Shown: positions 12,411-64,000, numbered from the stretch's first letter. The stretch: DNA of 64,000 nucleotides from Zancudomyces culisetae HAW-14-8 (GCA_052426225.1 JBNJNM010000009.1:372001-436000), one strand, 5' to 3'. The notes: generated from the letters alone by a model not told the origin. Made by a program: numbers and translations.

Positions 12411-12412
12411 AC

Positions 12413-12484
12413 AGCACCATAGCGCAGAGGAAGCGCGCAAGGCTCATAACCTTGAGGTCCCTAGATCGAAACTAGGTGGTGCTA
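12413..12484 (+). tRNA. Initiator tRNA-Met (CAT)
   Basis: A1:U72 acceptor AGCACCA/TGGTGCT, D arm AGCGCAGAGGAAGCGCG, anticodon loop CTCATAA, eukaryotic initiator-type T loop GATCGAAAC (A54, A60). Confidence 0.93.
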
Positions 12485-33598: not shown

Positions 33599-36546
33599 GA
33601 TTGATTCAAGATGTTCAACAAGATCAAGGTGTGGGAATCTGAAGTGTAGATTAACAGAGTGTGGTTGCGTGGAAAGTGAGATTGTAATTTCCTGAATTCC
33701 TTTTTAAAAGTAAAAAAAGCTTGCAAAGAAACTAAAAGGAACTGAAATAGAAATGGTGAATTTAGATATTTTTGGGATTACAAAAAAAAATAAGTGGCAA
33801 TTTAATGCTTTTGCTTTTACTTTTACTTTTGCTTTTGTTGATATAAATCATAAATAAGCTGACGTGAAATAAAAAAGCGAAAAAAACAGGTAAAAACTGA
33901 ATTCCCAACCTATACAGAAAGCGAACAAAAATGGAACAAGTAAAAACTGGTCATGAAATCATCACCATAACGGGTGGGTGGTTTATTTTAATACATCGCT
34001 TTCTTCTGGTCAGCCATTTCTAATTGGCTTGATTTGGGTATTTGTTGGCGCATTTGCTCAAAAAAAAATTTTTTATATTTCCAAGCCAATAAACATAGAC
34101 ACAAAATGCCAAATTAGCGTGGAAACATTCGGGTTTTTTGGTATAAAGGGAAATGTATGTATTTAAACTAATCTGGATTGTACATCAAATTCTTTGGGAA
34201 CAATAATTTATTTTTAATTTTTAATTTTTATGTCTGAAAATACAAAGCGTAAAAATTAAAAACGCAATCAGAACCTAACTGGGCATTGTTTACATTTTAG
34301 TTTGTTTTTCTAATTATATTTTACTGCGCTATTATAAACCCTAATTGGAATTAGTTCATAAAAGTCATATATTATAAATATGTTGTAAAAGTTGGCTAAG
34401 ACGAAAATTTGGAAAAAGCGAAATTAAGCAAATCGCTGCTAAATAGTATGCAACTGATGTCTATAGGCAAAGAATGTTGCTAAGGTTTATACCTAAAGTA
34501 TGCTCTATATTTTTCGTTTGTTTCTTATTTCACTCCTATTCAAGCTGTTTTATGCTTTCCCAAAACATTTGAGATATGAATTGTAGCGAGGATGGCTATA
34601 TTTTTATTTTTTTCAGATTCACATGTTGTTCCAAGTATAATCTAGATTACATAATTTGGTATATAAGTATCTGAATATCACATTTTTAAAAGAAAAACAA
34701 AACAAATCATATTTCTCCAGTGCGTTCAAATATTTAGGTTGTACAGTGTTTAAATCTGATACATTAAATTCAATTTAAAATTGTATAATATAGTATAAAG
34801 TATGAGGAACATTCAGGACCATCTTGTAGTGACGATTTTTTAATACCAACATTATTGCTATTATTCGTATGTTTGTTTACAATTTCAGTAATTGGTAAAG
34901 GGAAAGAAACTTGAAGAATAATGGAAATGATGTATTGTTCAAGAAGATTACATTCTTTTAAGGTTCAAGACTGCAATGGTATTTTGATTGTAGTAACATT
35001 TTTATTTGAGTATGAATAGTGTTTTAAGGAAAATAAAGTTGCTTTATTACCACAAATGTTAAGCATAGTTATATAACATATCAGTCTTATTCTGAAAACA
35101 AGCGGAGCTAATACTATTTATGAAATAAGTTAGTTTTCCAACACAGCCCGTTCTCTCGTTTCTAAAAGTTCTCTTTCTTCATTTTTAACTCATTTCAACC
35201 AAGTTACTGAATGATAAAATATGGCTAAATATGACAATAAATACTTATAAACCTAAGTCTGTTCACCCAGACCATCAGGCTCTTTGTGCTTAAGTGATAT
35301 TGATTTTGGGTCGTTGTAAAACCCTTTGACACTATTCTGAATAAAATCTACCAGCCTTTCTAGCTCTATCAACTTCATGATGAAATTCAACCAGCCGAGG
35401 TCACAAAAATTCCTTAATTACACTAGTAATGTAAATGATGGCTCTGTTTTAATTCCTTGTCATATAGTTTTTTGTGTTTTAGCATTCAAGGAGTTGGTTG
35501 TAGTTTTAGTACTATAGTTTTGTGTACTGAAGTAAAGCAACTTCAAAGTATACTAGTATCTGGTTTTCCATTTTTCAACACACTTTATTATTTCATCCAA
35601 CAGTAAAAGTGTAAACCAGAAAGCTAATCAAATACCGAATAGTGCATTTATCTTCTACTCCAGTTTCTAAATACGCACCTCCAAGGTATAATACAATCAG
35701 TATTATCTCAATACCCACAATTAAAAGAAATGTGCTATATTAACTCGTTTTACTATTATCTTTATAGAAAACGGGGTTATCACAAAAGCTTAAACCAAAA
35801 AAAAGTGATAAACCTCATACTAAATCGAGTCACAAACACAACTAACTCCAAAATACTTCACTACTTTTTTTAGGTATATTGTTAATTTGTTACAAAACCA
35901 CATAAATCATAAATAAGCTTGAAGCTCGATATACTACTACTCATAATTGTGTGTTTGGTATGCACCCCAGACAACTTCAATTGACCAAACCCTCTGAGTT
36001 TTACTGATCATTTGTGCTTTTCAACCAACTCCCACGTTCCGCATTGAACTGATGGTCTGGATGGTATATGGTTTTTACAAAGATATAACCGATCAGCCAG
36101 GTTCATACTTCGTAGATCATCTGTACATTTTGGATGATATTTGTTTGGAACATTTGAAAGCACTAAAAACAGTGCCACGATTGAAAAATGGAATTTGCAG
36201 CTAGAACTGGCTTTGACATTGGAATGAAATTGACACATGAAAAAGACGCCTTTTTCCGTTTTAATATTTTATTTCCACACACTCTAGATTTCACAGGTCA
36301 TTTGTTTTACAACTTTCAACTAAATAGAGTTTTCAAGTTTTTTTAAAAACCTGTCAAATCTAGGTATCCTATTAACACAAATATAAATAATCATCATTAT
36401 ACTATATTTGATACCAAAAATTGGCGTTTATTTTAGTTGAGCTTTTAACTTTTTAGAATTGACAGCGTAAATCACATCTTTTTACATTTCAACATATAGG
36501 TATATAAAACGAATAAAAAACTAATCCAAAAACTTTTGTGTCATAT

Positions 36547-38106
36547 TCATGATTGAGCGATATTTCGTACAATATATGAATTCGTACTATATAGTATTAC
36601 CCTTCTTAAAAGTTCCAAAATATAATACGAAAAATTTCTCGCATCAGGACTTTCGATCAAATCTAGTTCATCCTCAAACAACACAAGTTTTGTTACCAGA
36701 TTCGGTAAGTCGTGTGTAGCGTTCTCTCCCTTTTCATGGTTCTTTAGATTGTGTATTATCTTTGTCTCTATCTCCTCATTAAAGGTCGCCTTGTAAATAC
36801 AAGGTGTTAGTCCTTGAAAAAGGATTCCGTATACAGTAACATCATTGGATTCTTCTGTGCGGAGATACTTGCTATTTTTAAGGTGGCTTAAGTACAAAAC
36901 AAACATCTCTCCGATTAGCTGCGCTTCGCCGTTGGAACCATCAGTACTTCTGTCTACCTTGTTTTCAATTGCGATGTTACAATAAAATCCAAACTCGTTA
37001 TATATCGCCACATCAATTTCGGATACAATATGAATTTCAGAATCATCTATTTTTAGATATAGCTGTGCTATCTTTAATGCGGTATTTTTATTAAATCTGA
37101 AGATATCCAGTATGTTTTGTACATAACTGTTTACTACAGACTCATACGTTTTATTATCTCTCATACTCCTTAATACTGGTACAATACACTCATATATATG
37201 ATTAGTATTAGCCTCATTCATTAATTGTGTTATTTCGTATCTACTGTGTACCCATGAGTTAAGTAGAGTCAAAATCAACTTTTTTGATTTGTTTATATGA
37301 GGGTATTGCGTTTCTATATAATTCAATCCAGAAAAACTCATGTTTTCATCTTCATTAATACTTTCAAGCTCACTCTTGGAGCGAATATAGGTCTCTTCTA
37401 GTTTATCGTAGAAGTCCATCAACGACAACGACAGAATATATTTAATTTTGTTTTTGTCCTCCTTTTCCATACCAAAGAACTCCATAAATAGCTTTTTAGC
37501 TTCGTTTAAAGATTCGGAATTCACACCAAATATTTCACTGTCTGTGAAATCAGTTTTTCGAAATATTATTCTAAGATTTCCATTTTCATATATAACACGT
37601 TTACCCTCAAATAACACAACATTAGATTTGAGCATACGTTTAACAGTGGTTGCAATCGTATCTTTGTAGTTTGGATTGATAGTTTTGTTTTTAGCCAATT
37701 CCTCTAATTGGGTTTCGTTGATGCAAAGCTTTTGCATTAATTCATCCTTGGTCATTCTACGAAATCTCTTGCACATTTTCTTCAGATAATATCCGATTTC
37801 TTTGTTGTATTTACGTATGCTATCTTCATCAGATTGATATTTTAACTCGTGCTTGTTTACACCCATCAACAAATCCTCAGTAATATACTTCACAGTCCAT
37901 TTGCTTGTTGAGTTAATCTTTGTACTAGAAGTCCTGCTAGCACTTCCAACACTATCCTTTCTAGCCCTCTTTCCTCTGCTTGACCCTTCTGTCAATGATC
38001 CAATATCTTCCATTCTGTTACAAAATGCACACTTTTCACACTCTTCACACTTTTCACACTTAATACACCCTATACACATATATAACCTTTGATGTTTATG
38101 TGGCAT
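36547..38106 (-). CDS. Repeat-encoded protein copy 1: (CxxC)n + NLS-like N-terminus, C-terminal PD-(D/E)XK nuclease-like domain
   Basis: 519 aa intact ORF with CIGCIKCEKCEECEKCAFC, RGKRARK and TYESVVNSYV...EIDVAIY...IAIENK...EAQLIGEM...VYGIL. Confidence 0.75.
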   Translation of the reverse strand: MPHKHQRLYMCIGCIKCEKCEECEKCAFCNRMEDIGSLTEGSSRGKRARKDSVGSASRTSSTKINSTSKWTVKYITEDLLMGVNKHELKYQSDEDSIRKYNKEIGYYLKKMCKRFRRMTKDELMQKLCINETQLEELAKNKTINPNYKDTIATTVKRMLKSNVVLFEGKRVIYENGNLRIIFRKTDFTDSEIFGVNSESLNEAKKLFMEFFGMEKEDKNKIKYILSLSLMDFYDKLEETYIRSKSELESINEDENMSFSGLNYIETQYPHINKSKKLILTLLNSWVHSRYEITQLMNEANTNHIYECIVPVLRSMRDNKTYESVVNSYVQNILDIFRFNKNTALKIAQLYLKIDDSEIHIVSEIDVAIYNEFGFYCNIAIENKVDRSTDGSNGEAQLIGEMFVLYLSHLKNSKYLRTEESNDVTVYGILFQGLTPCIYKATFNEEIETKIIHNLKNHEKGENATHDLPNLVTKLVLFEDELDLIESPDARNFSYYILELLRRVILYSTNSYIVRNIAQS

Positions 38107-40303
38107 CTTCTTTCAAGTTACTTTGCTTTTATTTTATCTAGACGAACGTCTCTCTGTTTCGTATATCCTAAAAACAATAGAATTGTAGATTTTCTCTATC
38201 AACAATTGTGCACTATATGCTCTCTTTATTTTACTACAAACTGGCTAATATACGATGTATGCTTTAATCCACCATACAATCCTTGTACTCAATACAATGT
38301 AGTATTTACGAGTTCATTCAAGAGTTTCTAACTATTTATGCTTTTATTCAACCCTCATTGCCAAACACCACACTTCACGCTATAACATTTGCGTTGGGTG
38401 TTAGTATTTCACCAATATATTTAATACTGCAATTATAGATATATTGTATATGTGGTTGTTTGGAATTCGTAACCATTTTTCCAAAACAAAATACACAATA
38501 ACGCATACAAAAGTAAGCAAAAAGAACTGCTATGGTTTGTATAGCTATCTATTAATAAACATGATGTTTGACGTGATAAACCATTTGCATTAGTTTGTGG
38601 TGTAAATAGGTAAACAAATATGCATGTATTAACCAACACAGTCATAAAAACAGCACTTATTATTACTTTTTGAACTTGAGCATTATTACTAACTGACACA
38701 CACACAAAAGGTAGCTCGACATGAATATTCACATAATCAAAGCTAGTATTAACATTTTCAATAATAAGTAAATGACTCAGATGTTACTAAGCTGGAACAA
38801 CAAACTAGAATGGGGTTGACAATAGCATACTTGAACACACAAACTGAAGCCAACTGGAGTAAATAAACATTGAATGTCTAGGTCTATTCAATGTGTTTGT
38901 TAAACCATGAAGTACACAAACTAAAAATTGTATAGCCTCAAGTATCAGCATACTAAACTACAACACTGATTAACTGGTATAATATCTTTCCACCATTAAC
39001 TGTTGGATAACAATATTATCACCAACTAACAATGCAAATATTAACTCTGTTTTAATTTCTTGTCATATTGTTTTTTGTGTTTTAGCATTCAAGGAGGTGA
39101 AGGTAACTTTGATACTATAGTTTTGTGTACTGAAGTAAAGCAACATCAAAGTATACTAGTATCTGGTTTTCCATTTTTCAACACACTTTATTATTTCATC
39201 CAACAGTAAAAGTGTAAACCAGAAAGCTAATCAAATACCGAATAGTGCATTTATCTTCTACTCCAGTTTCTAAATACGCACCTCCAAGGTATAATACAAT
39301 CAGTATTATCTCAATACTCACAATTAAAAGAAATGTGCTATATTAACTCGTTTTACTATTATCTTTATAAAAATGATACCACACAAAAGTTTAACCAAAA
39401 AAAAGTGATAAACTTAATACTAAATCGAGTCACAAACACAACTAACTCCAAAATACTTCACTACTTTTTTTAGGTATATTGTTAATTTGTTACAAAACCA
39501 CATAAATCATAAATAAGCTTGAAGCTCGATATACTACTACTCATAATTGTGTGTTTGGTATGCACCCCAGACAACTTCAATTGACCAAACCCTCTGAGTT
39601 TTACTGATCATTTGTGCTTTTCAACCAACTCCCACGTTCCGCATTGAACTGATGGTCTGGATGGTATATGGTTTTTACAAAGATATAACCGATCAGCCAG
39701 GTTCATACTTCGTAGATCATCTGTACATTTTGGATGATATTTGTTTGGAACATTTGAAAGCATTAAAAACAATACCACGATTGAAACATAGAATTTGCAG
39801 CTAGAACTGGCTTTGACATTGAAATGAAATTGACACATGAAAAAGACAATTTTCCTTTCCGTTTTAATATTTTATTTCCACACACTCTAGATTTCACAGG
39901 TCATTTGTTTTACAACTTTCATCCTGGAACGCGTAGATTTTTTTTAGAGAGGATAGAAAAAAACTAATCCCGGTTAAAGATGCTCTAAAAGCGACCAAAC
40001 AGAACTTCATTGCATACGAATACACAGCCATTCATTTGTTGCTGCTACTCCTCATTCCGGGATCGTGAATGTTTAAGTCGAGTTAAAATTACATCTATAT
40101 TGCGTAGATTTACAGTTTGTAGAATATTCAATATATTTGATAAGCGTTGACTATAAAACCGGATATTCAAGTAGTAATCATTATCTCTATTCAAAATCAT
40201 TCATATTTTTCTTTCATTTTTCAAGAAAGAAACTAAACACACAAAATAGTATATCAAAAAAAAACCATTACAGTTACTTTACAAACGAGAAAAAACCACA
40301 AAT

Positions 40304-42118
40304 ATGCTGTTTCTTATGGAGCTAAAAGTGCCAGAACCCTCGCCACAGACAACCCTTAACAATGAAAGAAAAAACGGCTTCTTTCCTGTGGAGGACATGG
40401 GATTGTTTATTAACGGCGAAGAGGCTGTTGCGCAAAGAGAGAAGGTGCTGAAAATTGTACGCGCGGAACCAGAAATCTTTGGTATGAAAGAGATATACCA
40501 TATGAGTAGAACAGAAAAAATTGAACACTTATTGAAGCAGGAGCTTAGAATGGTAGAGTTACTAAGGGAGGATAAGCTTACCTCAGATGATATGCTTTTG
40601 GGTATGTCTACAGTTATTGGACTTTCAGGACCATATCGTTTAACCAGAAGCAATTTTATCCTCAGTTGAAAATCAATCAAATCCAGAGCAAATTGAAAAG
40701 TTTGTTAAACCGCTAGAAGAATATAGAATCATTTGATGCTATGCACAAACCGAATTGAACTAAACATAATGGGTAATGGATAATGGATATCTACACCTCA
40801 ACTATGTAGCGTACATTTAATTAATCTGTTACAAAAATACATAAACGTTTCACGAGATGGGACGTTTAGTCGGATAAAAAGTGCCGATCCCCGAATGACA
40901 TATATTTCAATGGTTCAGTTGAGAACAGGAATAGCCTCTGGGATGGGTGTTCTTTTGGCAAGAGCCGTTACTGTTGCCACCAGATACACTGCTGTACGCC
41001 GACAGTTTGGAAAGGTAGGAAAACCAGAAACGCCAGTAATAGATTACGAAATTGTCCAGCATCGAATAATCCCACTGATTGCTCAGGCCTATGCCATGAT
41101 CGGAATGACTCATGAACTTAAGAATCAATTTGTAAGAACCACAGATGCAATCGCAAAGAATGACTTTAGTTTGTTGAAAGAAATGCACGCAACAAGTGCT
41201 GGTCTAAAGAAGTGGAGTACAACAATAAGCATCTATGGAATTGATACCTGTCGTCATGTATGTGGTGGCCATGGATACTCGCAGTTCTCTGGATTGAACC
41301 AACTGTTTACAGATAATTATCCTGGTATTATATACGAAGGCGATAATTACATTCTTGCTCAGCAAACCACAAGATATGTACTAAATATTGCTGGGGATTT
41401 ACTTAAGGGGAGCAGTGACATTGAAAATAATGATACAACCAGGTATATGCAGCGATTCATCACTAAGAGTAATGTCAGTCCTAGTACATCAGCGTTGACT
41501 TGGGTTGGAAGAACTGCCAACCAATTAATTTCAAACAGAACCACACTTATTGATCTTCTGGCATATCGCCTGGCATCTATGACCTCAGATTTGGCACAAA
41601 AAATACACTTTAAGGGACATAAGTTTGAAGATTCTCTTGTAACCGCTCAAGTGATATCAATGGCACATTCAGAGTTTATAGTCGCCCTGTACTTTGACCG
41701 CTACCTCAAAACACTTCCACAAAGTTCACCACTAGCACCAATCCTCGATTTGATATTTGTCATATCGGCGCTGACTTTCTTGACCAGAAATATTGGAGAA
41801 TTACTGCTATTGCCAGCAGAGGCATAAATAAACAAGCAATTTATTGAAGACCTGGAAAGTGAGTATGCCAAAAGGATAAAGGAAGCTAGAGAACAAGCTG
41901 TACCACTCGTTGATGCATTTGATATTCCTGATGAAATATTAAACTCGAGTTTGGGCCGTTACGATGGTGATGTATACAGAGACCATGTCAGGAGAGCATT
42001 AAAAGAACCGCTTAACAGCGAGAAATTTGGAAATGAAATCCGTACAAAATTCTACAACGAGTATACAAGGACAGTACTTTCTAGCGGAAATAGCACCATG
42101 GGAAGTGCAAAGCTTTAA
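40304..42118 (+). pseudogene. Peroxisomal acyl-CoA oxidase pseudogene inserted in repeat unit 2
   Basis: ACOX motifs LNNERKNG, II*CYAQTEL (Gly codon is TGA), MDNGYL, RYTAVRRQFG, CGGHGYS, YEGDNYIL and LVDAFD...LNSSLGRYDGDVY, ending SAKL* (PTS1). It has a broken frame near 40670, an in-frame TAA at 41825-41827, and lacks the middle domain between YAQTEL and MDNG. Confidence 0.9.
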
Positions 42119-42357
42119 CTAACATTTGAATGTACGGCTTTTTGCATCCCACTTACCCTTGAAACAACTTACTGGTATATCTGTTACTCCTCAACCTTTT
42201 ATAACCGGCTTTATTGGAAAGTGAATGAGATGTGTATCCTAGATGCATCAAAAACAAGTAGGTAGATGTTGTGTAAACATTTGGTTTTTAAAGATGCTAT
42301 TAAGATATAAAATATATAAAACGAATAAAAAACTTATTCAAAACCTCCATGTCATAT

Positions 42358-43953
42358 TCATGATTGAGCGATATTGCACACCAAGTGTGAATTGGAATCA
42401 TACAAGACAACTCTTCGTAATAGTTCGATTATGTAATAAGAATAATTACGAGCACCTGGGCTCGTAATTAAATTTGGATTTCCCTTAAACAGTACAAACT
42501 TTGATATCAAATTCAAAAATTTGACTGGAGGCGTTTTCATCTCTTTAATATTCTTTTGATTTTGTAGAATCTGGTTTGCTACCTCTCGGGTAAAGTGACC
42601 CTTGTATATAGTTGGTCTTAGACCAATAAATAAAATCCCGTATACAGTTTTTTCGTTACACTTCTCTATATCTACTCCATCTTCAGAACTGAATAAATCT
42701 AAGAAATATGCAAACATTTCACCAATAATTTGGGCTTTTGCGTTTGTGCCATTAGTTGGATTTTGGGTCTTATCCTCTATGACAAGGTTTCCTTTATAGG
42801 AATCCTTGTCGTATAACATAACATCTACGCCAGATGCTATACTTATACTTGAGCTGCGTATGTTGAAGTTTAAGCTCCCTATTTTTATTTTGTGACTTTT
42901 GTTAAAGCTAAGGATTCCTAGTATGCTTTTTACATAGTCATCAATGAACTTTTCATTGTTTTCATCGCCTATAATAGCCCTTAATGTTGGTAGAATACAT
43001 TGGTATGAGTCGTTTCTGTCTGACTCGCTCATTAACTGCAATATTTCATTTTCGCTAATTGCTCTCGAGTTCAGGAGAGTTAGAATCGATTTTTTTGATC
43101 CACTTATACGAGTATACTCAGTTTCTATATCATCCAATCCGTGAAAGCACAAAAGCTTATGTTCATCTTCCTCCTTCTCCTTCTCCTTCTCCTTTTTCTG
43201 TTTTCCCTTTGCAAGTTCACTCTTAGAGCGAATATAGGATTCCTCCAATTTTTTATAAAATTCTATGAGTGTTAGAGAAAGTATATACTTAATTTTGTTA
43301 TTCTTATCTTTTTCCCTGCTTATGAATTTAATAAAGTTTTCTTTAGCTGAGTGTAGAAATTCGCTATCTACACCAAACACCTCTTCATCTGAAAATGTAG
43401 TCCTAAAACTTTCCAATATTAGTTCTCCATTGTCATATATCAATTGTTCACAGTCAACTAAAACAACATAATACGAAAGTATGGCTTCAGCAACGGTTGC
43501 GTCGATACCGTTGTAGTCGGGCTTAATCTTTTTATTCTTAGTTAATTCTTCATATTGCGTTTTGTTGATGCAAAACTTTTGCATTAATTCATCCTTGGTC
43601 ATTCTAACTGTTCTCTTGTCTATATAATCTTTATAACGACCGAGTTCCTTGTTTACTATACATCTGTTGTGTAAATCGGTTGGGTATAGTGAATCGAACC
43701 TTTTTATGTCTACTGGAAAATCATCAGTAATATACTTCACAGTCCATTTGCTTGTTGAGTTAATCTTTGTACTAGAAGTCCTGCTATCACTTCCAACACT
43801 ATCCTTTCTAGCCCTCTTTCCTCTGCTTGACCCTTCTGTCAATGATCCAATATCTTCCATTCTGTTACAAAATGCACACTTTTCACACTCTTCACACTTT
43901 TCACACTTAATACACCCTATACACATATATAACCTTTGATGTTTATGTGGCAT
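42358..43953 (-). CDS. Repeat-encoded protein copy 2 (PD-(D/E)XK nuclease-like)
   Basis: 531 aa; first ~75 aa almost identical to copy 1; NNEKFIDDYV...GVDVMLY...LVIEDK...KAQIIGEM...VYGIL. Confidence 0.75.
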   Translation of the reverse strand: MPHKHQRLYMCIGCIKCEKCEECEKCAFCNRMEDIGSLTEGSSRGKRARKDSVGSDSRTSSTKINSTSKWTVKYITDDFPVDIKRFDSLYPTDLHNRCIVNKELGRYKDYIDKRTVRMTKDELMQKFCINKTQYEELTKNKKIKPDYNGIDATVAEAILSYYVVLVDCEQLIYDNGELILESFRTTFSDEEVFGVDSEFLHSAKENFIKFISREKDKNNKIKYILSLTLIEFYKKLEESYIRSKSELAKGKQKKEKEKEKEEDEHKLLCFHGLDDIETEYTRISGSKKSILTLLNSRAISENEILQLMSESDRNDSYQCILPTLRAIIGDENNEKFIDDYVKSILGILSFNKSHKIKIGSLNFNIRSSSISIASGVDVMLYDKDSYKGNLVIEDKTQNPTNGTNAKAQIIGEMFAYFLDLFSSEDGVDIEKCNEKTVYGILFIGLRPTIYKGHFTREVANQILQNQKNIKEMKTPPVKFLNLISKFVLFKGNPNLITSPGARNYSYYIIELLRRVVLYDSNSHLVCNIAQS

Positions 43954-45974
43954 CTTCTTTCAAGTTACTTTGCTTTTATTTTATCTAGACGAACGTCTCT
44001 CTGTTTCGTATATCCCAAAAACAATAGTGCAGTATATGTTCTCTTTATTCTATTACAAACTGGCTAATATATGATGTATGCTTTAATTCACCATACAATC
44101 CTTGTACTCAATACAATGTAGTATTTACGAGTTCATTCAAGAATCCCTAACTATTTATGCTTTTATTCAACTCTGATTGTCAAACACCACACTTCACGCT
44201 ATAACATTTGCGTTGGGTGTTAGTATTTCACCAATATATTTAATACTGCAATTATAGATATATTGTATATGTGGTTGTTTGGAATTCGTAACCATTTTTC
44301 CAAAACAAAATACACAATAACGCATACAAAAGTAAGCAAAAAGAACTGCTATGGTTTGTATAGCTATCTATTAATAAACAATATGTTTGATGTGATAAAC
44401 CATTTGCATTAGTTTGTGGTGTAAATAGGTAAACAAGTATGCATGTATTAACCAACACAGTCATAAAAACAGCACTTATTATTACTTGTTGAACTTGAAA
44501 AATGATAACCAACTGACACACACACAAGGTAACTCGACATGAATATTTACATATTCAAAGCCGGTATTAACATTTTCAATAATGAGTAGATGACTCAGAT
44601 GTTACTAAGCTGGAACAACAAACTAAAATTAGGTTTACAATAGCATACTTGAACACACAAACTGAAGCCAACTGGAGTAAATAAACATTGAATGTCTAGG
44701 TCTATTCAATGTGTTTGTTAAACCATGAAGTACACAAACTAAAAATTGTATAGCCTCAAGTATCAGCATACTAAGCTACAACACTGATTAGCTGGTATAA
44801 TATCACCTCACCATTAACTGTTGGATAACAATATTATCACCAACTAACAATGTAAATATTAACTCTGTTTTAATTTCTTGTCATATTGTTTTTTGTGTTT
44901 TAGCATTCAAGGAGTTGGTTGTAGTTTTAGTACTATAGTTTTGTGTAACTGAAGTAAAGCAACTTCAAAGTGTACTAGCAACTGGTTTTCCATTTTTCAA
45001 CACACTTTATTATTTCATCCAACAGTAAAAGTGTAAACCAGAAAGCTAATCAAATACCGAATAGTGCATTTATCTTCTACTCCAGTTTCTAAATACGCAC
45101 CTCCAAGGTATAATACAATCAGTAATATCTCAATACCCACAATTAAAAGAAATGTGCTATATTAACTCGTTTCACCATTATCTTTATAAAAATGATACCA
45201 CACAAAAGCTTAAACCAAAAAAAAGTGATAAACCTCATACTAAATCGAGTCACAAACACAACTAACTCCACAATACTTCACTACATCTTTTTAGGTAGAT
45301 TATTAGTTTGTTACAAAACCACATAAATCATAAATAAGCTTGAAGCTCGATATACTACTACTCATAATTGTGTGTTTGGTATGCACCCCAGACAACTTCA
45401 ATTGACCAAACCCTTTGAGTTTTACTGATCATTTGTGCTTTTCAACCAACTCCCACCTTTCACATTGAACTGATGGTCTGGATAGTATATGGTTTTTACA
45501 AAGATATAACCGATCAGCCAGGCTCATACTTCGTAGATCATCTGTCCAGTTTGGATGATATTTGTTTGGAACAGTTGACAGCACTAAAAACAGTGCCACG
45601 ATTGAAACATAGAATTTGCAGCTAGAACTGGCTTTGACATTGAAATGAAATTGACATGAAAAAGACGCCTTTTTCCGTTTTAATATTTTATTTCCACACA
45701 CTCTAGATTTCACAGGTCATTTGTTTTACAACTTTCATATTCATAGAGTTTTCAAGTTTTTTTAAAAACCTGTCAAATCTAGGTATCCTATATAACACAT
45801 AAACATATAAATAATCATCAATATACTATATTTGATACCAAAAATTGGCGTTTATTTTAGTTGAGCTTTTAACTTTTAAGAATTGACAGCGTAAATCACA
45901 CCTTTTTAAATTTCAACATATAGGTATATAAAACGAATAAAACTAATCCAAAAACTTTTGTGTCATATTCATGA

Positions 45975-47600
45975 TTAAGCGATATTGCACACCAAGTGTG
46001 AATTGGAGTCATGCAAGACAACTCTTCTAAACAACTCTATAATAAAGTAGGAATAATTACGAGCACCTGGGCTCGTAATTAAGTTCTCTATGCCTTTAAA
46101 AAGCACAAGCTTTGATACCACATTCGATACTTTTTCTGTAATCTCCTCGTAGTTCTGATACTTTTTATGATTTTTTATGATCAGCTCTGCTGTTTTACTG
46201 TCGAAAGTAGCTTTATAAAACGTTGGTCTTAAACCGATAAAAACAATCCCGTAAACTGTTTTTTCCTTTAACCTATCCAAATTGATTTTATTATCCACAG
46301 TGAATTGGCTCATATATACGGAGAACATCTCTCCAATAATCTGCGCTTCAGCGTTTTTGATATTGTATCCTGTGTCTGTTTTGTCTTCGACACCGAAGCA
46401 ATAGTTAGTTACATTTTCTTTGAATAGACTCACATCCACTTGGGATGATAGGCTTACGTTATTGGTGTTAATCCTGAGATTTAAGCTACCAATGTTTATA
46501 CTGTTGTTTTTGTTATAGGAAAAGATTCCTAATATGCTTTTTACGTAGTCGTCAATGACTTTTTCATCCTTTTTATTGCCTGTCATAGCCCTTAGTGTTG
46601 GTAGAACACACTGATATGAGTCGTTTCTGTCAGCTTCATTCATCAGCTCGATCATTTCATCTTTGTTTTTTACTCTTGAGTTCAGAAGAGTCAAAATTGA
46701 TTTTTTTGATCCGTTTATGTGGGTGTATTCTGCTTCTATATTATCCAATTTAGAAGAACTCATTTTTTTATCTTCATTTTCATCCTCATCCTCATCCTCA
46801 TCCTCATCCTCATCCTCATCCTCATCCTCATCCTCATCCTCATCCTCATCCTCATCCTCATTAATCCTTTCAAGCTCACTCTTGGAGCGAATATAGGTCT
46901 CTTCTAGTTTATCGTAGAAGTCCATCAACGACAACGACAGAATATATTCAATTTTGTTTTTGTCATCTTTATCATCGTTTATGAACTTAATAAATTCTTC
47001 CTTTGCTTGATCCAGACTTTTTTTACGAACACCGAATATTTTACTGTCTGTGAAATTAGTTTTTCGATATATTAATCTAAGATTTCCATTTTCATATATA
47101 ACACGCTTACCCTCAAATAACACAACACTAGATGTGAGATTACGTTTAACAATGATTGCAATCGTATCTTTGTAGTTTGGATTGATAGTTTTGTTTTTAG
47201 CCAATTCCTCTAATTGGGTTTCATCAATGTAAAGATAAAGCGAGAGTACGTCTTGAGCCATGTTAATGGTTCCTTTGCTCAATTCTTCCCTATAACGCCT
47301 GAGTTTGTTTATTTTTATACACTCGATTTGTAAATCGTCTGGATATAATATCTTGTGCTCAGGAAATGTTGAAAAACAAGCTTCAATACTCTCCATAGTC
47401 CATCTACAAGTAGAGTCAAGCTTTTTACTAGAAATGCTGCTGTCACCTTCAACACTATCCTTTCTAGCCCTCTTTCCTCTGCTTGACCCTTCTGTAGATG
47501 ACCCAATATCTGACATTCTGTTACAAAATTCACACTCTTCACACTCTTCACACTCTTCACACCTTATACATATATATAACCTTTGATGTTTATGTGGCAT
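45975..47600 (-). CDS. Repeat-encoded protein copy 3 (PD-(D/E)XK nuclease-like) with poly-(ED) linker
   Basis: 541 aa; CIRCEECEECEECEFC, RGKRARK and KDEKVIDDYV...QVDVSLF...FGVEDK...EAQIIGEM...VYGIV. Confidence 0.75.
   Translation of the reverse strand: MPHKHQRLYICIRCEECEECEECEFCNRMSDIGSSTEGSSRGKRARKDSVEGDSSISSKKLDSTCRWTMESIEACFSTFPEHKILYPDDLQIECIKINKLRRYREELSKGTINMAQDVLSLYLYIDETQLEELAKNKTINPNYKDTIAIIVKRNLTSSVVLFEGKRVIYENGNLRLIYRKTNFTDSKIFGVRKKSLDQAKEEFIKFINDDKDDKNKIEYILSLSLMDFYDKLEETYIRSKSELERINEDEDEDEDEDEDEDEDEDEDEDEDEDENEDKKMSSSKLDNIEAEYTHINGSKKSILTLLNSRVKNKDEMIELMNEADRNDSYQCVLPTLRAMTGNKKDEKVIDDYVKSILGIFSYNKNNSINIGSLNLRINTNNVSLSSQVDVSLFKENVTNYCFGVEDKTDTGYNIKNAEAQIIGEMFSVYMSQFTVDNKINLDRLKEKTVYGIVFIGLRPTFYKATFDSKTAELIIKNHKKYQNYEEITEKVSNVVSKLVLFKGIENLITSPGARNYSYFIIELFRRVVLHDSNSHLVCNIA
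46780..46861. repeat. (TCATCC)n hexanucleotide microsatellite encoding the poly-ED tract of copy 3
   Basis: About 13 direct tandem copies of catcct. Confidence 0.95.
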
Positions 47601-49049
47601 CTTCTTTCAAGTTACTTTGCTTTTATTTTATCTAGACGAACGTCTCTCTGTTTCGTATATCCTAAAAACAATAGAATTGTAGATTTTCTCTATCAACAAT
47701 TGTGCACTATATGCTCTCTTTATTCTATTACAAACTGGCTAATATATGATGTATGCTTTAATTCACCATACAATCCTTGTACTCAATACAATGTAGTATT
47801 TACGAGTTCATTCAAGAGTTTCTAACTATTTATGCTTTTATTCAACCCTCATTGCCAAACACCACACTTCACGCTATAACATTTGTGTTGGGTATTAATA
47901 TTGCAACAGTATATTTAATGCCGCATTTATAGATATATTGTATATGTGGTTGTTTGGAATTCGTAACCATTTTTCCAAAACAAAATACACAATAACGCAT
48001 ACAAAAGTAAGCAAAAAGAACTGCTATGGTTTGTATAGCTATCTATTAATAAACAATATGTTTGATGTGATAAACCATTTTTATTAGTTTGTGGTGTAAA
48101 TAGGTAAACAAATATGCATGTATTAGCCAACACAACCACAAAAACAGCACTTATCACCTTTTTGAACTTGAAGAATGATAACCAACTGACACACATACAC
48201 AAGGTAACTCGACATGAATATTCACATAATCAAAGCTAGTATTAACATTTTCAATAATGAGTAAATGACTCGGATGTTACTAAGCTGGAACAACAAACTA
48301 AAATTAGGTTTACAATAGCATACATGGACACACAAACTGAAGTCAACTGGAGTAAATAAACATTGAATGTCTGGGTCTATTCAACGTGTTTGTTAAACCA
48401 TGAAATACACAAACTAAAAATGACATGGTAAATAAAATGACATGGCCTCAAGTATCAGCATACTAATCTGCGTCATTCTGATTAAATGGTGTAATATCCC
48501 TCCCACCCTCCATTAACTGCTTAATATTAATTCAACTTCTAAATAGTGTAGTAAAAAAAAAGGTTGCTTTATGACCACAAGGGTTAACTATAATTATATA
48601 ATATATCATTCTTGATTTCAAATATAAGCTAAGTCAATAGATCGAAAAGAATAAATATGGATTTTTACAAATAAGTAAAGCCACCAGCAGAGTGGAAAGA
48701 GAGAAAATGAGCACAAAGTCGCAAAAGTAACTTATTGTTCACATTATATTCAACAAATAATTTACCCCCTCTTTTTTTTGAAAGTATAGTGATAATGAAT
48801 ACACTCTACCTGTCCAAAGTGTTTAATCAAACAAGAAGGAATAGATATCTAAAATCGAATACTTGTTTAGGGATATCACACTCTTGTATCATTATGGTAT
48901 TCGTTTGATTTTAGTTACCCAATTACTCGAGTGTTTAATTATTGGGTTGTTGGTAGTAAATATATAAAAATTATGACATTTAAAAAATAATGGATAATGA
49001 ATAAAAATGATAGTTAAGTATACAAGGAGGAGGTAACAAAAAAGAAAGA

Positions 49050-53099: not shown

Positions 53100-55328
53100 T
53101 TATAACCAAGATTGCCAACCTACAAACATTCTACATAATCTTGCAGGATCAGTTGCTTCCATAAGCAATTCGTTGACATGACAATCGAGTTGAATGTTGG
53201 AGTTGGACAATTTGTTTGAAATCTCCAAAATTACACGTTCAGCATCAGAATTAATCGTATTAAAAACTAGGCTGTCTTCCACCAAATTCTCGGCGTTATT
53301 ATTGGCATTACCACGTGATGATAGAGAATTAGTGGTTGGAGCATAGATGGAAAGAAGAGCGTTGTATTGCTTGTTGAATGTGACTTTGAAGGAGTCGGAC
53401 CAGTTGTACAACGGGTCCAGTCGTAATACATTGAGGATAGTGATGATGAGGGGCTTTATGGAGGTGAGAAGTGATAGGGATGAAGAGCAGTGGGAAGCAA
53501 AGGGACTATTACAAAGTTGAGTTTCCATGGCATGTTCATCATTATAATTATCCAATTCATCATCATTATTATTATTGTTGTTGTTGTTGTTGTTGTTGTT
53601 GGTGTTACCATATGATAAATATGAAGATGAAGATATTGATAAAATTCCCAAAGCATCAACCATATTTCTAGTTAATCGGAACGGAACCAATTCAGGGACA
53701 GGCAAGAGTTTTCCATACCCAAAGGCAATACCCAAATCAATCATGACCAATTCACACGATCCACAATCCAACAAAATGTTTTGGCAATGCCGGTCACCGA
53801 TTCCCAACATCCACCCCACCATGCTGCTTATTGCCAAGCTCTGGCTATATCTAGTTTGGTTGGTAATGTAATCTAGGCTGGTTTTTGCACTTGAAATTAT
53901 GAATTGTCGGAATTTTGGTGTAATAGACTTAGTCAAGTTTATAAATGTATTTTTTAACTCTTCATCTTTATTACTGCTCTTTGTTGTTGTTGCTGTAGTT
54001 GTTGTTGTTGTTGTTGTTGTTGTTGTATTTGAATTTGATTTTTGTTGGGCTTGAATCATTAATCTTCGATATTGTTGAATATCCTTCATATTATATAATT
54101 TTGTAGATAAATATGTTCCATAAGGAATAGTATTACCAACAAATTGTAACACTCCACATTGACTAGTTATGGGAATTACTATATAAGTACGGATTCGCAT
54201 TTGTCCTTTTCCTTTACCTTTACCTTTTCCTGTTGAACTGAAATTACTATTATTATTGCTGTTGCTGTTGCTGTCACTGTTTTGGTTAATTAAACTAAAT
54301 ACTTGCTCTATAACTGCATCTTGTCTAATATCATCCTTTCCTTTAACCACTTGTTTATGTATAATTCCATCACTTCCCAAAATACTAATTATTTTTGGTA
54401 AGTTTATTCCACCTGCCAATTCATAATGTTGATATATTTGTTCTATATACACTATCCCTCCTCCTTCTCCTCCACCACTAGTGTTGTTATAGTGTGTATT
54501 TTGTACAACATTATCAAAGAAATACGGATTGTTTTCGGTAATAATGGGAATCTTAGTCCTTAGAACTCCTTCTGGTTTTCCCATGTTGGCTATTCGGTTG
54601 ATTTTCCAATTACTTGGAAACTTGATTTTGTCGGTTGTTGATGTACTTGATGGTTTGGAATTCGACATTTCAATATACGAGGATATTAACAAGTCGAAAT
54701 TGCTAATCATGTCATGATATTCCGAACCTCCAAAACCAGAATTCCCGTCATTCTTAATATTAGCATTGGTATTGGTATTTGTATTTGTATTTGTGTTGCC
54801 ACTTGATGAGTAATAAACACGTTGTAATTTATCTAGCAAAATACTTGCTACGCATTCACTCCCATTCCCATTACTATTACTACTACTATTCCCATTACTA
54901 TTACTACTATTACTTTTGTTAGTAAAAGTTTTCTGTTTAAGCGATATTTCGTTTGTGGTATTTCTCAATTTAATGGAGAAAATGGTAGATAAAGTTAAAT
55001 GGGGCAGTTTGGTACAAACTTTATAAACCAATCGAAAGAGTAATTCCAAAAACCGATTACTATTACTCTTATTTTTATCTTTTACATGATTTGGATTTGG
55101 GTTTGGGTTTGGATTTGGGTTTGGATTAGAATAGGTATCTTGGTAAAGAACATTTAATTTGGCACACAATTGAGTAAATACAACTAACCATTTATGACTT
55201 TTTATTCGAGAGTGTAAACCGACTCTTTCCCAAATTCCATCGATTTTATTATTGATTCCTCCAAAAGTCAAGAGTAATTTTGTAATTACAATAATTGCAT
55301 AACTATCACTTGCAACTCGATTATTATT

Positions 55329-55369
<41 letters not shown>

Positions 55370-56902
55370 GAATTAGGTACCTTGCAAAGTACCATAGACT
55401 GCTTGTTAGGTAATAATCCAAATCCTTGGTTTTATCAGCTAGTAGGTTTTCATCCATACTGATTTGTTGTCGTAATTTATCAATTCGTCTCTTTAAATTA
55501 GCAGCCTTAGCAGCAATGACCTTACTACTAACATTAGCATCATTTTTCCCACCAATATTACTGGGATTGATATTGATATTGACAGTAATAGATGATAGCT
55601 CAGCAATTAACCCTTCCATTTCTCGTTTCTTTTCCTTTAAGACCAAATCCAAAATCTTGTTGTTTTCGGTAATATCTCGTGATATTAACTCGAGTTGTGA
55701 ATCTGCATATTTTGCCAGCGAAAACATTATATCCACAACCATGTTATTATCCTCACCACCACTATTACTACTGGCTGTATCTAGTAATTGGATCGCATTG
55801 CTATAATATGCCTTAATAATCTCTTTGGGCCTTGCTTGTCGTTGATTTGCTAACCATTCAGATGCCAGATAGTACATTTCAGCCATTTGTTTTACATTTA
55901 CATTTACATTTACATTTAAATTTGCATTTGCATTGTTGTTGTTGCTGTTGTTGTTGTTTTTATTTTTATTAAGAATTAAAAGTTGTTCTTTCGAGGTATT
56001 AATGTTGGATAATATCATGGATAATGCCATTTCATGTTTACCACCCATATACAAACATTTGGCCTGTAATGTCTTGACCATAGTGCAATCCAATTGGACT
56101 TTTGACGTCAGCCGGTTTATAGTTTTCATGGCAGTAGTACTAAAATAAAGATATTCATTGCCAATTCCACCAAATGAAGAATTCCCCCTTTTATTCAAGT
56201 AGCCGCCACTATAATTCCCATCAAAATTATTACTATTAGTATTAGTATTAGTATTAGTATTGGTATTATTATCAAAATAGGAATTGTTGGCAATATTGTT
56301 GTTGATTATCAATAGCGATGCAGTTTTATATCCCTCGACTATTCGAGGATGTTTTGGATATTTGTTGATCAGAATTTCCCATAATATTAGGTTGAATTCG
56401 TAATTGTAGTTTTTGACATCCACATTCACTTTTCCGGCACCGGCACCGGCACCGACACCGACACCGACACCGACACCATTATTATTGAATGACGAGGATG
56501 AACATGATTTTAAAAATTGTTGGATTTCTAATAAATCATCTATAAACCGTTCGGTTAAAAACATTGGTTTGTAGGTAGTTAGAATATATCCAAACATACT
56601 TGTAATATCTGCGACCACTTTACTATCTTTGGTATTGTTACTGTTACTGTTATTGCTATTGCTATTGCTATTGTTGTTATTATTTGCTCCACCATAAACA
56701 TAGCCATAGCCATAGCCATAGCCATAGCCATTATTGCGTTTATTTTTGCTTAGTGTTTTGTTTAGGTTGAGTAATTCAATGTTGGAAAATGCAATATTTC
56801 TGTTCCAGTAATTTAATAATGAATAAATTACTTTATTCTTGTCGAAATATTGTTGATTAGAAATATTTTGAGGCGTGAGTAATAGTTGAAATGTTGGTAG
56901 TA

Positions 56903-56946
<44 letters not shown>

Positions 56947-59900
56947 TCAGCCAGAACTGGTTTTGGATCTGATAGTGGAATTGAAGTTCTAGCTAATAAA
57001 ACGGGATTATGGTAGATCGGTAATGAATCCCAATTAGATAACCGCCAAGCACTAGCATAATCATAGTCGATACTATAATTTTTTACTTGAATTTCTTTTT
57101 GAGAGTTAGTAGAAATAGGCCTGGAAACACCATGGTCATGATAACTATTGTTGTTGTAAAGATTGCCAAAAGTACTTGTCGGATCAGTTGCAAAATCCAT
57201 GGAATTTTGTTGTTCCAAGGTCAGCAATAGTTCAAAGTATTGGCGATCAACCATGTTTGAAGAATGCCCAAGTTTGTAGTATACATCGCTAATGTTATTT
57301 GTTGGAATCAGCGAATCGACCAAATCAAAATCATGGATATGCCTCAATTCCTCACTACTCACTATAAACGAGTTGATTATGGCTTGTTGCCTTCCATGAT
57401 GGCTATAGTCTTGAGTTGTTGAGATCAAGTTGTGGTAGGAATATGGTATAATTTCGACAACTTGGTTATTATTATTATTATTATCGGTATTTCTTTTTTG
57501 ACTCCTAGTAGTATTACCACTACTACTCTGTTGCGTTGCATTGCTATCCAAATCAAATTTATAAAACATAAGGTTGCCAAACATAAAACTAGCAGTATAC
57601 AATCCCAACTTTTCACTCATAACCACCAAGTTTTGGTAATCCAACGGTAATATAATTGGTTCATTATTTGAACTTGTTTGTGATTTTTCAATCATTTCAA
57701 AGACCATTTTTTCCAATCCCAAAATCACCAATTTACAAGATTCTTCATCCAAAAATATTCTGTATTCGTTACTAAATGTTCTTTTGTCTTTGGTAATACT
57801 CGTTTCGTTATTGATTGTTGATTGTGGGTTTATAGGTGTTGAATTTAGAGAAAATGAAATTAAATTGCACAACTTGTAACCATATTCTTTTACAGTCTTG
57901 TAATATTCCCGTATATTACTATCATTAGTATTAGTATTAGCATTAGTATTATTGTTGGCCAGTGGATTAATAAACAGTCTACTCAACATATCTCTATGGT
58001 AGAGATTGATTAGAGTTGGATTTAGTTGTAGTATAAACTGTTTAAAAAGTTCCAGGACCTTTTTCTCTCTCAGTACCAATGACGAACTTGGTACTGATAC
58101 CGAAATGCTTTGAATAAGCGTTTCTAATAAAACCAGTCCAAGGATATTTTTATTATTAATTTTGAATGAAATCCTGGAATCACTAGTATTAGTATTAGTA
58201 CTAGTATTAGTACTGATGCGGTTGTTGTTATTAATGTTATTAATGTTATTATTGCTGTTGTAATTAAATTGTGACAATATTTGGTCATCCAATAACCCGT
58301 ATAATTCTAAATTATTTGTCCTTTGGGTAGTCGGGGTATAGGTGGAGGTTAAAATAGTAGATTTGAAGAGTTTAACTGTATCTTGTTTGCTACCCTGACT
58401 TGGTCCATGTTGTTTATCAAATGCGTTAATAGTTGGGTTTGAGTTTGAGTTTGAGTTTGATTTTGAGTTTGATTTTGAGTTTGATTTGATTGGTTTTTGA
58501 ATGTTTAGAATTTGGATTAGAAACTGCAAAATAATAGTAAAATCATTAGAATTCCAAATAATTTCACTTTCTTTAAACACTTCTCCTCCACTAACATTGT
58601 TATTATTACAGCCAGCTTGATTGTCTGCAACTATTACCAAGTGGTAAACAAGTAGCTCAAACAACTCGATGGGATTGTCAATAGACAAATCCAAAAATCC
58701 AATATCATTTAGCTGGCACCCTTTATCTCCATACCCACTGTGGTTGTAAACAGACTCTGGTATATTATTATTATTATTATTGGTATTACAGAGTTTAGAC
58801 TTCAAGACTACCAAGTTTTTCAATGTATAAAGCTTGCTCTCGAGAATGTTGGTTTTACTATATCCACCCATTCTGCTACTCACACTCATCAGTGCACAGG
58901 TGTTTGAGTTATTTGTCATTAAGTAAGTCTTTAAGGCCAATAGTTTTATTAAATATTCGAGTCTGTTGTATATCAAATCATAAAATATCTGGTTGCCAAC
59001 TGTATTAGCATTGTTACTGTTATTGATATTGGTATTGTTATTGTTATTGTTATTGTAGATGAATTTGTGGATTTGTTCAATAATGTAGATCGAGTAGTTT
59101 GGATAATTCAAATTCACACTGTCCAACAACCTAACTAAAAAGGCTGTATCAATGTCGTTTATATCAATTGTATCAAATGCGAATAAAAAGCTCTGGCTAT
59201 TCAACAAATCATACAAATAATCATTTTCACTTTTATTTTCATGTTGGCAGTAGTAATAAGTTTCGTAAATCACAGAGTTTATCAAGTCTGTAAACTTGGT
59301 TTCAAAGGGATGATTTTCCATATATAAAAGCAGATACTTTATCAAATTGAGCCCATTCAAATCTCCATTTTTCTTTTCTTCTTGCTTCATTTCATGCTCA
59401 GAAATATTGTGTGCTTGGTTGGTTTTAACGTTCTTGTATACTGTCAATGCTAGCAACATTAGATAAAACATCACAAATTCATCACATTTTCCATTATCCA
59501 GAGTAAAAACGAACGCTAGAATACTCAGTATTTTGCTCGCTTGGTCCAATTTCCCTCTTTCAACATACCCCCTGTGCACTTCACATAGGTAAAACAATTG
59601 GTTACTATTGATAATATTGAAGAGATTGTTGAAAATATCATTTAAATGTTCAATTTCCATCTCATCACGATCGAGACCAAACAAAGTTGTTACAATATCC
59701 AGAGTAAAGTCCTTGGCGATATTAATGTCCTTTTTCTTGTCACTATTATAATATTGATCAATTTTACTAATGTATTTGTTGCAATCAAAATGTACAGATA
59801 CTTTTTCAATCAGTTTTAACCATACTGGATGACTATACTTTTGCAACAAGCCGTTAAACTCCCTGTCGCTATTGACATTATCAAGAATAGCTGTGTTGAA

Positions 59901-62900: not shown

Positions 62901-64000
62901 TAATACCAACACATTTTCCCATTTTTTAATCCGATTGCTATATTTGCTACTCATAATGCTAGCCGGCTGAGTCTGGCTAGTTATTTTCGTTAATATCCCA
63001 ACACAACCTTCTGCGCTCAATAAATATAGCCTGTCATTCACACTGCCTGCCACAACTGCCCACAAATGTACTGTTTTCAACAACACTACCGCCAATGTTT
63101 GAACACTAACCAGTCTCCGTTTGATCTGTTCGGTATCAAAACCATTGGTATCGACTATCTCTCCAATCAGCTCTTGTAAACAGCTTGGTTCATCTTGCTC
63201 TTGCCCGTCATTGCCCCGCCTGAAGGTATTTTGATCTTTATTATGCTTGTTGGTTTGTTGATGTAATTGTAGTTTTAATTGTAATTGTTGTTGTGTTTTA
63301 TAATTTAGTATTACAATATCGCTTGCAATTTCCAAATACAACCACTCAAAGACTGTATTGTTCAGAACGATAACATCACCACTGCTCTCAATCATTATAT
63401 ATTTCAACACGTTGTCCCATACATTGCCACCCACCAGTCTCGCCAATCCCAATGTCATTTGTTCATAGCTATGTGAAGGATTAAATAGTTCGTACACAAA
63501 CACTTCATTGATTTTCTCAAAACTTGTCGTTTCTCCAAACATCGAATGATCCAAATTAACGAGTCTATTTACCAATGCCTTGTTTTCAAGAATCTCACGC
63601 TCCAAAACTATTTCATAATCCTTTTCTTCCTCACTTTTAACAGCCGGGCTACCACAAAACAATGTCGGAATTGTTGGTCCCTTGAGCCACCGTCCATATA
63701 TATACGCCAATTTTAAACTCATCAACTGAATGTCCATGTTATACGAACTGGAATACTTCATTATTGTATGCTTAATCCCTTTTGATACAAGTTTTAAAAG
63801 CTTTGTTCTGTTTTTTCTAGTCTCCTTCAACTTCATTATTGAACTATAAAACACTTTTAAAATATTTAATTGTACTGCTCCTTCACGTCGACCCCCAAAA
63901 CTACCAAAACTACCACCACCACCATTGCCTCCAATACTACTACCTCCAATACCAACTCCAACTCCAACACTACCTCTCCCTTCACTCCCACTTTTACTAA
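53100..64000 (-). CDS. TEL1: PIKK kinase Tel1/ATM (5' end beyond window)
   Basis: Motifs AGGINLPK, KGKDDIRQDAVIEQVF, LGIGDRHCQNIL, IDLGIAF and PELVPFRLTR, with FATC ATDPARLCRMFVGWQSWL. The frame stays open upstream of 63854 to the window end. Confidence 0.9.
62421..62480. repeat. (TGATTT)n microsatellite encoding a QN repeat in Tel1
   Basis: Direct tandem hexamers; one of many such coding microsatellites in this gene. Confidence 0.9.

Follow-up and report, generated by a model that had tools for sequence, protein, structure and literature searches.

How three strongly diverged copies of one gene can persist inside almost uniform surrounding DNA, and what the encoded proteins may do, are the questions raised by a tandem array in the mosquito-gut fungus Zancudomyces culisetae HAW-14-8. 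The array occupies 35422-48520 of a 64,000-nucleotide stretch of the genome (GCA_052426225.1, JBNJNM010000009.1:372001-436000; hereafter the window, to which all coordinates refer). Z. culisetae is an insect-gut dweller, and a long-read assembly of HAW-14-8 exists (PMC12611240). An earlier note, written from the sequence alone, had described three PD-(D/E)XK nuclease-like genes here and proposed an effector, toxin or selfish-element system under conflict-driven diversification. Our work indicated that the three proteins very probably end in a domain that has a restriction endonuclease (REase) fold, and that the diversity among the copies is old, maintained and reshuffled rather than newly made by substitution. 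Judging from its relatives, this domain is a member of an unnamed family of considerable size, in which most proteins stand alone and measure ~260 aa. Taken as a whole, the interpretation of the locus as a repertoire of nucleus-acting REase-fold nucleases from an unnamed, widespread, conflict-type family may be correct, with the balance lying evenly between right and wrong.

Based on direct-repeat families at 3.6 and 5.8 kb spacing and on the alignment of the units, the array was divided into three head-to-tail units, A (35422-39024, 3603 bp), B (39025-44843, 5819 bp) and C (44844 to ~48520, ~3650 bp), each containing one open reading frame (ORF) for a predicted soluble protein of ~490-540 aa. 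All three ORFs were intact and lay on the minus strand, copy 1 at 36547-38106 (519 aa), copy 2 at 42358-43953 (531 aa) and copy 3 at 45975-47600 (541 aa), in line with the three head-to-tail units and the ~520-540 aa expected beforehand; the expected unit length of ~3.6 kb was right for A and C but not for B. Each reading frame was uninterrupted, so that the three genes are plausibly intronless. The pairwise identity among the three proteins was 54%. A blastn search with unit A and a tblastn copy count, the latter suggested in the earlier note and made here within the window, detected exactly three units, all inside the array, and no further copy elsewhere in the 64 kb. The proteins share one architecture, consisting of a basic patch resembling a nuclear localisation signal (NLS), a species-specific N-terminal and middle region, a charged linker and the C-terminal PD-(D/E)XK-like domain.

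The C-terminal domain was delimited with a profile (A5) composed of relatives outside Zancudomyces only. It matched residues 275-466 of copy 1 (36709-37284, minus strand; E 5.9e-17), residues 303-468 of copy 2 (42550-43047, minus strand; E 4.7e-23) and residues 302-492 of copy 3 (46125-46697, minus strand; E 1.2e-26). An E...D-x15-ExK...Q core was present in all three copies, with D365, E381 and K383 in copy 1, E334, D377, E393, K395 and Q408 in copy 2, and D389, E405 and K407 in copy 3; the anticipated D...ExK...Q pattern was therefore found in every copy, with a D-to-E spacing of 15 rather than ~14 residues. For copy 2, an AlphaFold model of the domain built on a joint family alignment reached a predicted local distance difference test (pLDDT) score of 74 and a predicted template modelling (pTM) score of 0.75. 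The model was composed of a helix (63-76 in domain numbering), three strands (85-95, 100-111 and 117-124), a second helix (134-148) and two further strands (164-172 and 175-183), a modelled topology that is the textbook alpha-beta-beta-beta-alpha-beta core of PD-(D/E)XK enzymes. In this model, E334 was placed on a helix, D377 on one strand, E393 and K395 on the next strand and Q408 on the following helix, that is, D106 and E122-x-K124 of the domain numbering were on the second and third core strands. In the joint alignment K124 and Y179 were invariant, and E63, D106, Q137 and G173 were at least 90% conserved. The core E, D, E, K and Q were kept in 121, 130, 116, 130 and 131 of the 149 aligned domains, respectively, with 11-19 domains gapped per column. 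In this way, the putative catalytic residues, which had been said to be kept in all three copies, were found to be kept across the wider family as well.

Structural comparison pointed in the same direction. The top Foldseek matches of the domain model in the PDB, none of them significant, were almost all REase-fold proteins, including Cas4 SSO0001, 3ijm, MGME1, type I-C Cas4, DrdV, NucC, McrC, RecB/AdnAB and CinB, and the top named matches in BFVD were RecB, Cas4 and PD-(D/E)XK proteins. Sub-threshold matches to PD-(D/E)XK profiles were obtained with three different relatives (HSDR_N_2, 0.004; Cas_Cas4, 0.03; PADLOC PD_DExK, 6.7e-4), and a sequence-profile search of the PDB returned nothing. 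Taken together, the modelled topology, the Foldseek neighbours, the profile matches and the conserved core make an REase fold with an intact set of active-site residues well supported at the superfamily level, as the earlier note had predicted for the C-terminal region, and such a domain would be expected to act as a metal-dependent nuclease. Compared with nucleases of the Cas4-RecB-MGME1 type, the domain shares the helix/three-strand/helix/strand core and the order of an acidic residue, D, ExK and Q. Differently, the array proteins gave no significant sequence or structure match to those enzymes, the domain is without their iron-sulphur Cys cluster, and the helix motif is Q-x3-E in the family instead of the RecB-type Q-x3-Y (PMC6660238). 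Three relatives (P0019, P0021 and P0030) are named 'Fungal-type protein kinase domain-containing' in UniRef, the FunK1 label, but neither Pkinase_fungal (PF17667) nor any other kinase model matched the relatives so named up to an E-value of 10, and the other family members gave no match to Pfam kinase models either; the name may have been inherited from an earlier model of greater length. The alternative that the D...ExK...Q stretch is the N-lobe of a kinase was rejected on the basis of the missing kinase match, the nuclease fold neighbours and the lack of a second lobe.

An exhaustive HMMER search of 1.84 billion representative sequences with a Zancudomyces-weighted profile of the paralogues detected 24 proteins, of which 20 were 160-330 aa in length and stood beside Z. 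culisetae paralogues and fragments. All 20 short relatives matched profile positions ~250-440, the region with the D/ExK/Q motif. Their sources included the chytrid Boothiomyces, Selaginella, Conidiobolus, the mushroom-forming fungi Sparassis, Amanita, Hypsizygus and Tricholoma, and metagenomes; further relatives were obtained from Hohenbuehelia, Russula and Gymnopus. With one degenerate pattern derived from alignment A5, at least 150 family loci were confirmed in JGI metagenomes, where the ORFs had no interruptions, a median length of 270 aa and no long fusion partners; in 185,579 bacterial and archaeal species represented by one genome each, a scan with one family pattern detected none. A word-index search, a weak one in which 8000 word-sharing candidates were scored, likewise found no longer fusions of 292-929 aa. 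No Pfam model matched the family. The proposal of an undescribed family was accordingly right as to the lack of a Pfam model, but the family is not a local one, being widespread as proteins of ~260 aa; what is unannotated is a family and an architecture within the known PD-(D/E)XK superfamily.

More than one family copy was contained in 12 of the 79 metagenome loci that were kept, the densest having five full-length copies within 10.5 kb. Where two or more long copies were present, at six loci, the pairs at one locus were mostly 20-69% identical and a single pair was 89% identical, and clusters of diverged paralogues are therefore a trait of the family. Five metagenome loci were compact, long ORFs covering 75-85% of their length, and are virus- or linear-plasmid-like elements. 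Two of them (L024 and L034) encode a family-B DNA polymerase together with Rpb2-like and Rpb1-like proteins, another (L023) encodes Rpb1, Rpb5, UDG and DUF5757, and one family copy was found on an IMG/VR contig (L080). On L023, L024, L034, L053 and L080, one to several family copies were observed near a contig end, and the gene content across these five comprised a family-B DNA polymerase, RNA-polymerase subunit homologues, UDG, Rpb5 or a GH18 chitinase.

The patchy distribution of the family and its presence on virus- or plasmid-like contigs would suit a nuclease encoded by a mobile element (a transposon, or a homing-type endonuclease gene that is free-standing), whose repair-mediated copying co-converts the flanks. 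The near-identical flanks around divergent gene bodies and a gene relic within unit B could be read in the same sense. However, neither terminal inverted repeats nor long terminal repeats bound the unit, domains of a transposase, integrase or reverse transcriptase were not found, the copies in the window are confined to a head-to-tail array between housekeeping genes, and the relatives are short stand-alone ORFs, so that a mobile-element nuclease is regarded as improbable.

The comparison with SPOK of Podospora was also considered. In SPOK, killing depends on the PD-(D/E)XK domain and its catalytic Lys, whereas resistance depends on a kinase domain (PMC6660238). Like the array proteins, SPOK is an intracellular fungal PD-(D/E)XK protein that is multicopy and unevenly distributed (PMC6660238), and a killer or meiotic driver of this kind, in which the nuclease of a single intracellular protein kills cells or spores lacking the gene, would also agree with the NLS-like patch. 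Additionally, APH/choline-kinase-fold ORFs were observed beside or among family copies on compact, virus- or plasmid-like metagenome contigs (L038, 3910-4656 and 7649-8398; L024, 8549-9523). This adjacency echoes the pairing of nuclease and kinase, and is a lead, not a finding. On the other hand, in SPOK the nuclease is followed downstream by a kinase domain and by a Cys cluster, and the array proteins possess neither; they end ~90 residues past the nuclease core, and their sole Cys cluster is a repeat-derived N-terminal leader. No homology to SPOK was detected in the exhaustive search with the family profile, in which all matches outside Z. culisetae were of 330 aa or less, and no antidote function was evident in the array. 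A Spok-like driver thus appears rather unlikely, and no kinship was detected to the Crinkler or Spok genes named in the earlier note.

The preferred interpretation of a maintained nuclease repertoire was derived from the manner in which the copies differ, the most unusual trait of this locus. According to the unit alignment, the intergenic DNA between units was 93-100% identical per 100 nt and ~95% identical overall; for example, the segment upstream of copy 1 (38107-39024) was 94-96% identical to its counterparts in units B and C. In the ORF interior, nucleotide identity dropped to 50-65%. By the Nei-Gojobori method, the proportion of synonymous differences (pS) over the whole ORFs was 0.52-0.58, equivalent to a synonymous divergence (dS) of 0.9-1.1, the proportion of nonsynonymous differences (pN) was 0.26-0.27 and the ratio of nonsynonymous to synonymous divergence (dN/dS) was 0.30-0.37; in the C-terminal half pS was 0.6-0.9. 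High-identity blocks were shared by copies 1 and 2 (the first ~75 codons), by copies 1 and 3 (200 nt, 92-93%) and by copies 2 and 3 (100 nt, 85%). The grouping of two copies against one shifted along the gene from 1+2 to 1+3 and then to 2+3. This heterogeneity of site patterns was strong (chi2 178.8, p 1.7e-27) and was reached by none of 1000 permutations. Among eight paralogues, the nuclease domain fell into four discrete types, and N-terminal blocks were re-assorted among the types. Given the near-saturated dS, the ~95% identical flanks and the shifting groupings, the copies are old lineages that have been shuffled by recombination: the coding interiors are much more ancient than the DNA flanking them, evolve under purifying selection and have traded blocks. 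Most simply, the flanks would be homogenised, and the blocks moved, by gene conversion or unequal exchange, with the gene bodies shielded from homogenisation.

These results bore out the conflict-driven diversification suggested from the sequence beforehand only in part. They did not agree with diversification by recent point substitution, since dN/dS was ~0.3, the synonymous sites were near saturation and the flanks were ~95% identical. A recent triplication followed by diversification through point mutation does not fit the near-saturated synonymous sites. If the triplication had instead been followed by local hypermutation of the ORFs rather than by recombination of old lineages, the ~20-fold contrast between a flank divergence of ~0.05 and a synonymous divergence of ~1 would be explained; but identity jumped from ~50% to 85-93% in blocks, different pairs sharing different blocks, and therefore hypermutation does not fit. 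The ORFs are also still open, with the core residues intact, and this history is considered highly improbable.

The same data were weighed for the possibility that a nuclease of DNA repair or recombination has simply expanded in this lineage, without any role in conflict and with concerted evolution of the non-coding DNA. Purifying selection at a dN/dS of ~0.3, the housekeeping chromosomal setting and fold neighbours including MGME1, RecB and AdnAB are all compatible with it. Nevertheless, neither other sequenced Harpellales nor the majority of fungi yielded an orthologue, the family has a patchy and clustered occurrence with co-located paralogues that are mostly 20-69% identical, and saturated gene bodies inside 95%-identical flanks require selection against homogenisation of the coding part. 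A repair-nuclease expansion is unlikely for these reasons, and no single-copy syntenic orthologue with a housekeeping role, which the earlier note had named as speaking against its proposal, was found.

Outside the nuclease domain, the proteins offered fewer footholds. A leader with five or six overlapping CxxC motifs at residues 11-29 was present in all three copies, and its Cys spacing derives from a 9-bp tandem repeat detected by Tandem Repeats Finder (TRF) on the minus strand at 38028-38061 in copy 1, 43875-43908 in copy 2 and 47529-47562 in copy 3. The leader repeat of copy 3 was one 9-bp unit shorter than the others. The leader scored 12.4-13.8 bits against the Pfam model zf-CXXC (PF02008), below its cut-off of 26.5, and this Cys-rich segment is an uncertain, putative coding segment. 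The basic patch RGKRARK was located at 37957-37977 in copy 1 (residue 44), 43804-43824 in copy 2 (residue 44) and 47460-47480 in copy 3 (residue 41), all on the minus strand, and the motif check confirmed both the CxxC-repeat N-terminus and the NLS-like patch that had been described for every copy. RGKRARK fits the pattern of a monopartite NLS, through which the proteins might be imported into the nucleus. A full-length AlphaFold model was poor overall (pLDDT 45) and its Foldseek search uninformative; its sole confident part (pLDDT 70-90) was a compact module of three helices and a three-stranded sheet at residues ~110-190 of copy 2 (43384-43626, minus strand), which is possibly a DNA-binding or specificity module. 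Among the 1.84 billion representatives, no relative of the N-terminal half was detected outside Z. culisetae. Stretches with Ser-x-Trp and Phe-Phe-Gly in the short relatives resembled Zancudomyces residues 64-87 and 208-233, a likeness that was not significant (independent E-values of 0.5 and 0.13) and at most suggests that the species-specific module could be an insertion. The two halves are joined by a low-complexity charged linker whose length differs in all three copies; in copy 3 only, a perfect (TCATCC)13.7 microsatellite (46780-46861, minus strand; TRF) encodes a long Glu/Asp tract.

In every 19-residue window of the three proteins the Kyte-Doolittle mean was at most 1.41, and therefore neither a signal peptide nor a membrane segment is present, in agreement with the earlier statement on the signal peptide. 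This result bears on a Crinkler-type effector that would be delivered into insect cells and act in the host nucleus. Crinkler/CR proteins frequently end in toxin domains of the REase fold (PMC5289972; PMC6131194), and the array proteins share with them a eukaryotic C-terminal REase-fold domain, a modular and paralogue-rich make-up and a sporadic distribution including a chytrid, the zoopagomycete Conidiobolus and Selaginella; the NLS-like patch and the insect-gut lifestyle (PMC12611240) would fit as well. The families CR-REase 1-9 (Zhang et al. 2016) were considered as described in PMC5289972 and PMC6131194. In contrast to Crinkler/CR effectors, the array proteins have no header domain and no NTPase or kinase partner: neither a Crinkler header or ubiquitin-like domain (Pfam) nor an LFLAK/HVLV-type motif (motif check) was found in any of the three, as had been foreseen for the ubiquitin-like header. 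No Crinkler protein was among the matches of the exhaustive search, and the wealth of relatives in mushroom-forming fungi and in soil metagenomes, together with those on virus-like contigs, does not fit a host-directed effector, which makes this alternative very unlikely.

Full-length relatives were limited, among 5.8 billion clustered proteins, to five Z. culisetae 'hypothetical proteins' that were 45-94% identical. Copy 2 was ~99% identical to one of the public models (P0001) over the shared part, and these models are probably from strain COL-18-3 (PMC5026252). Counterparts of the array were observed on tiny short-read contigs, which would be the outcome if the short-read assembly had been fragmented at the repeated flanks. 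Two further models (P0002 and P0006) lay on one 73-kb contig, an apparent second locus with a full copy and a 150-aa fragment two genes apart.

Based on these observations, a mechanism can be proposed for the nuclease repertoire. The array proteins would enter the nucleus, where the C-terminal domain would cut nucleic acid by metal-dependent PD-(D/E)XK chemistry, with the specificity for a target or a partner presumably set by the variable N-terminal half. Gene conversion would homogenise the flanks and reshuffle blocks while selection holds the gene bodies apart, and as an outcome a repertoire of nuclease variants would be maintained. The most likely use of such a repertoire would be intracellular genetic conflict, the proteins either protecting the cell from invading DNA or forming part of a selfish gene that resembles a toxin. 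For a role in conflict, the arguments for and against appeared to be of equal weight; a secreted effector or a housekeeping enzyme is less likely than an intracellular conflict function, and the labels effector, toxin and selfish element are unproven. A more far-reaching version may also be entertained, in which the array represents a single locus in a repertoire driven by recombination, whose old, divergent nuclease cassettes, kept apart by selection, are re-assorted by gene conversion within homogenised frames. They would serve this early-diverging fungus as a variable, nucleus-acting, restriction-like defence or as an addiction module of a family that is exchanged with giant-virus-like or linear-plasmid-like elements and paired with small kinase genes. 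This version is tentative, and we consider it doubtful.

Several points weigh against the interpretation of the array as a conflict-type nuclease repertoire. With regard to the domain, no Foldseek match fell below an E-value of 1e-3, the best having E-values of 3e-3 to 1e-1 and TM-scores of 0.25-0.43; nuclease profiles of Pfam and PADLOC gave no direct match to the window's own proteins; and the active-site geometry is read from the topology of a model. With regard to the N-terminus, a downstream Met is the start in four of the five public Z. culisetae paralogue models. The overall dN/dS was below 1, pN being similar to pS only at codons ~81-120. Two of the public paralogues (P0003 and P0004) come from short-read contigs of 2-5 kb and could be assembly chimeras. 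Finally, the conflict role is argued by analogy, from the patchy distribution, the clustered diverged paralogues and the virus-like contigs.

The chromosomal surroundings of the array are of an ordinary kind. The window is AT-rich eukaryotic DNA with a G+C content of 30-43%. By Pfam, housekeeping genes flanked the array on both sides, namely genes for synaptojanin-like, isopropylmalate/homocitrate-synthase-like, histone deacetylase and CHY-RING proteins on one side, and for thymidylate synthase, MCM5 and a 3584-aa kinase on the other. The last of these is a single uninterrupted ORF (53100-63854, minus strand) which ends in PI3_PI4_kinase and FATC domains and is therefore a PI3K-related kinase. 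Long uninterrupted ORFs of this sort in the window indicate that local genes have few or no introns. Scans of the array for Rfam families, tRNAs and inverted repeats were empty. Elsewhere in the window, genes for tRNA-Glu(CUC) and tRNA-Met(CAU) at 12339-12484 (plus strand) are separated by two bases and may form a dicistronic pair. Unit B owes its excess length to ~2.3 kb downstream of the copy 2 ORF that carry an acyl-CoA-oxidase-like relic, found in this unit only (40250-42115, plus strand). Pfam and a frame survey detected matches to the N-terminal, C-alpha1 and C-terminal domains in an interrupted frame from which the middle domain is absent; the relic may be an ancestral neighbour or a later insertion.

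If the interpretation as a conflict-type nuclease repertoire is true, a large unannotated eukaryotic REase-fold family exists, with hundreds of members in fungi and soil metagenomes besides the copies on virus-like contigs, and it behaves as conflict genes do, being patchy, clustered and diversified. The Z. culisetae locus would then be an unusually clean case of repertoire upkeep, in which old gene bodies are shuffled while the surrounding DNA stays uniform. Should the proteins turn out to be ordinary repair nucleases instead, the locus would still be instructive as an example of concerted evolution halting where coding sequence begins or ends. As a nuclease family of the conflict type, it would be a concrete place to seek self/non-self systems that work through nucleases, both in early-diverging fungi and in the viruses of these fungi.

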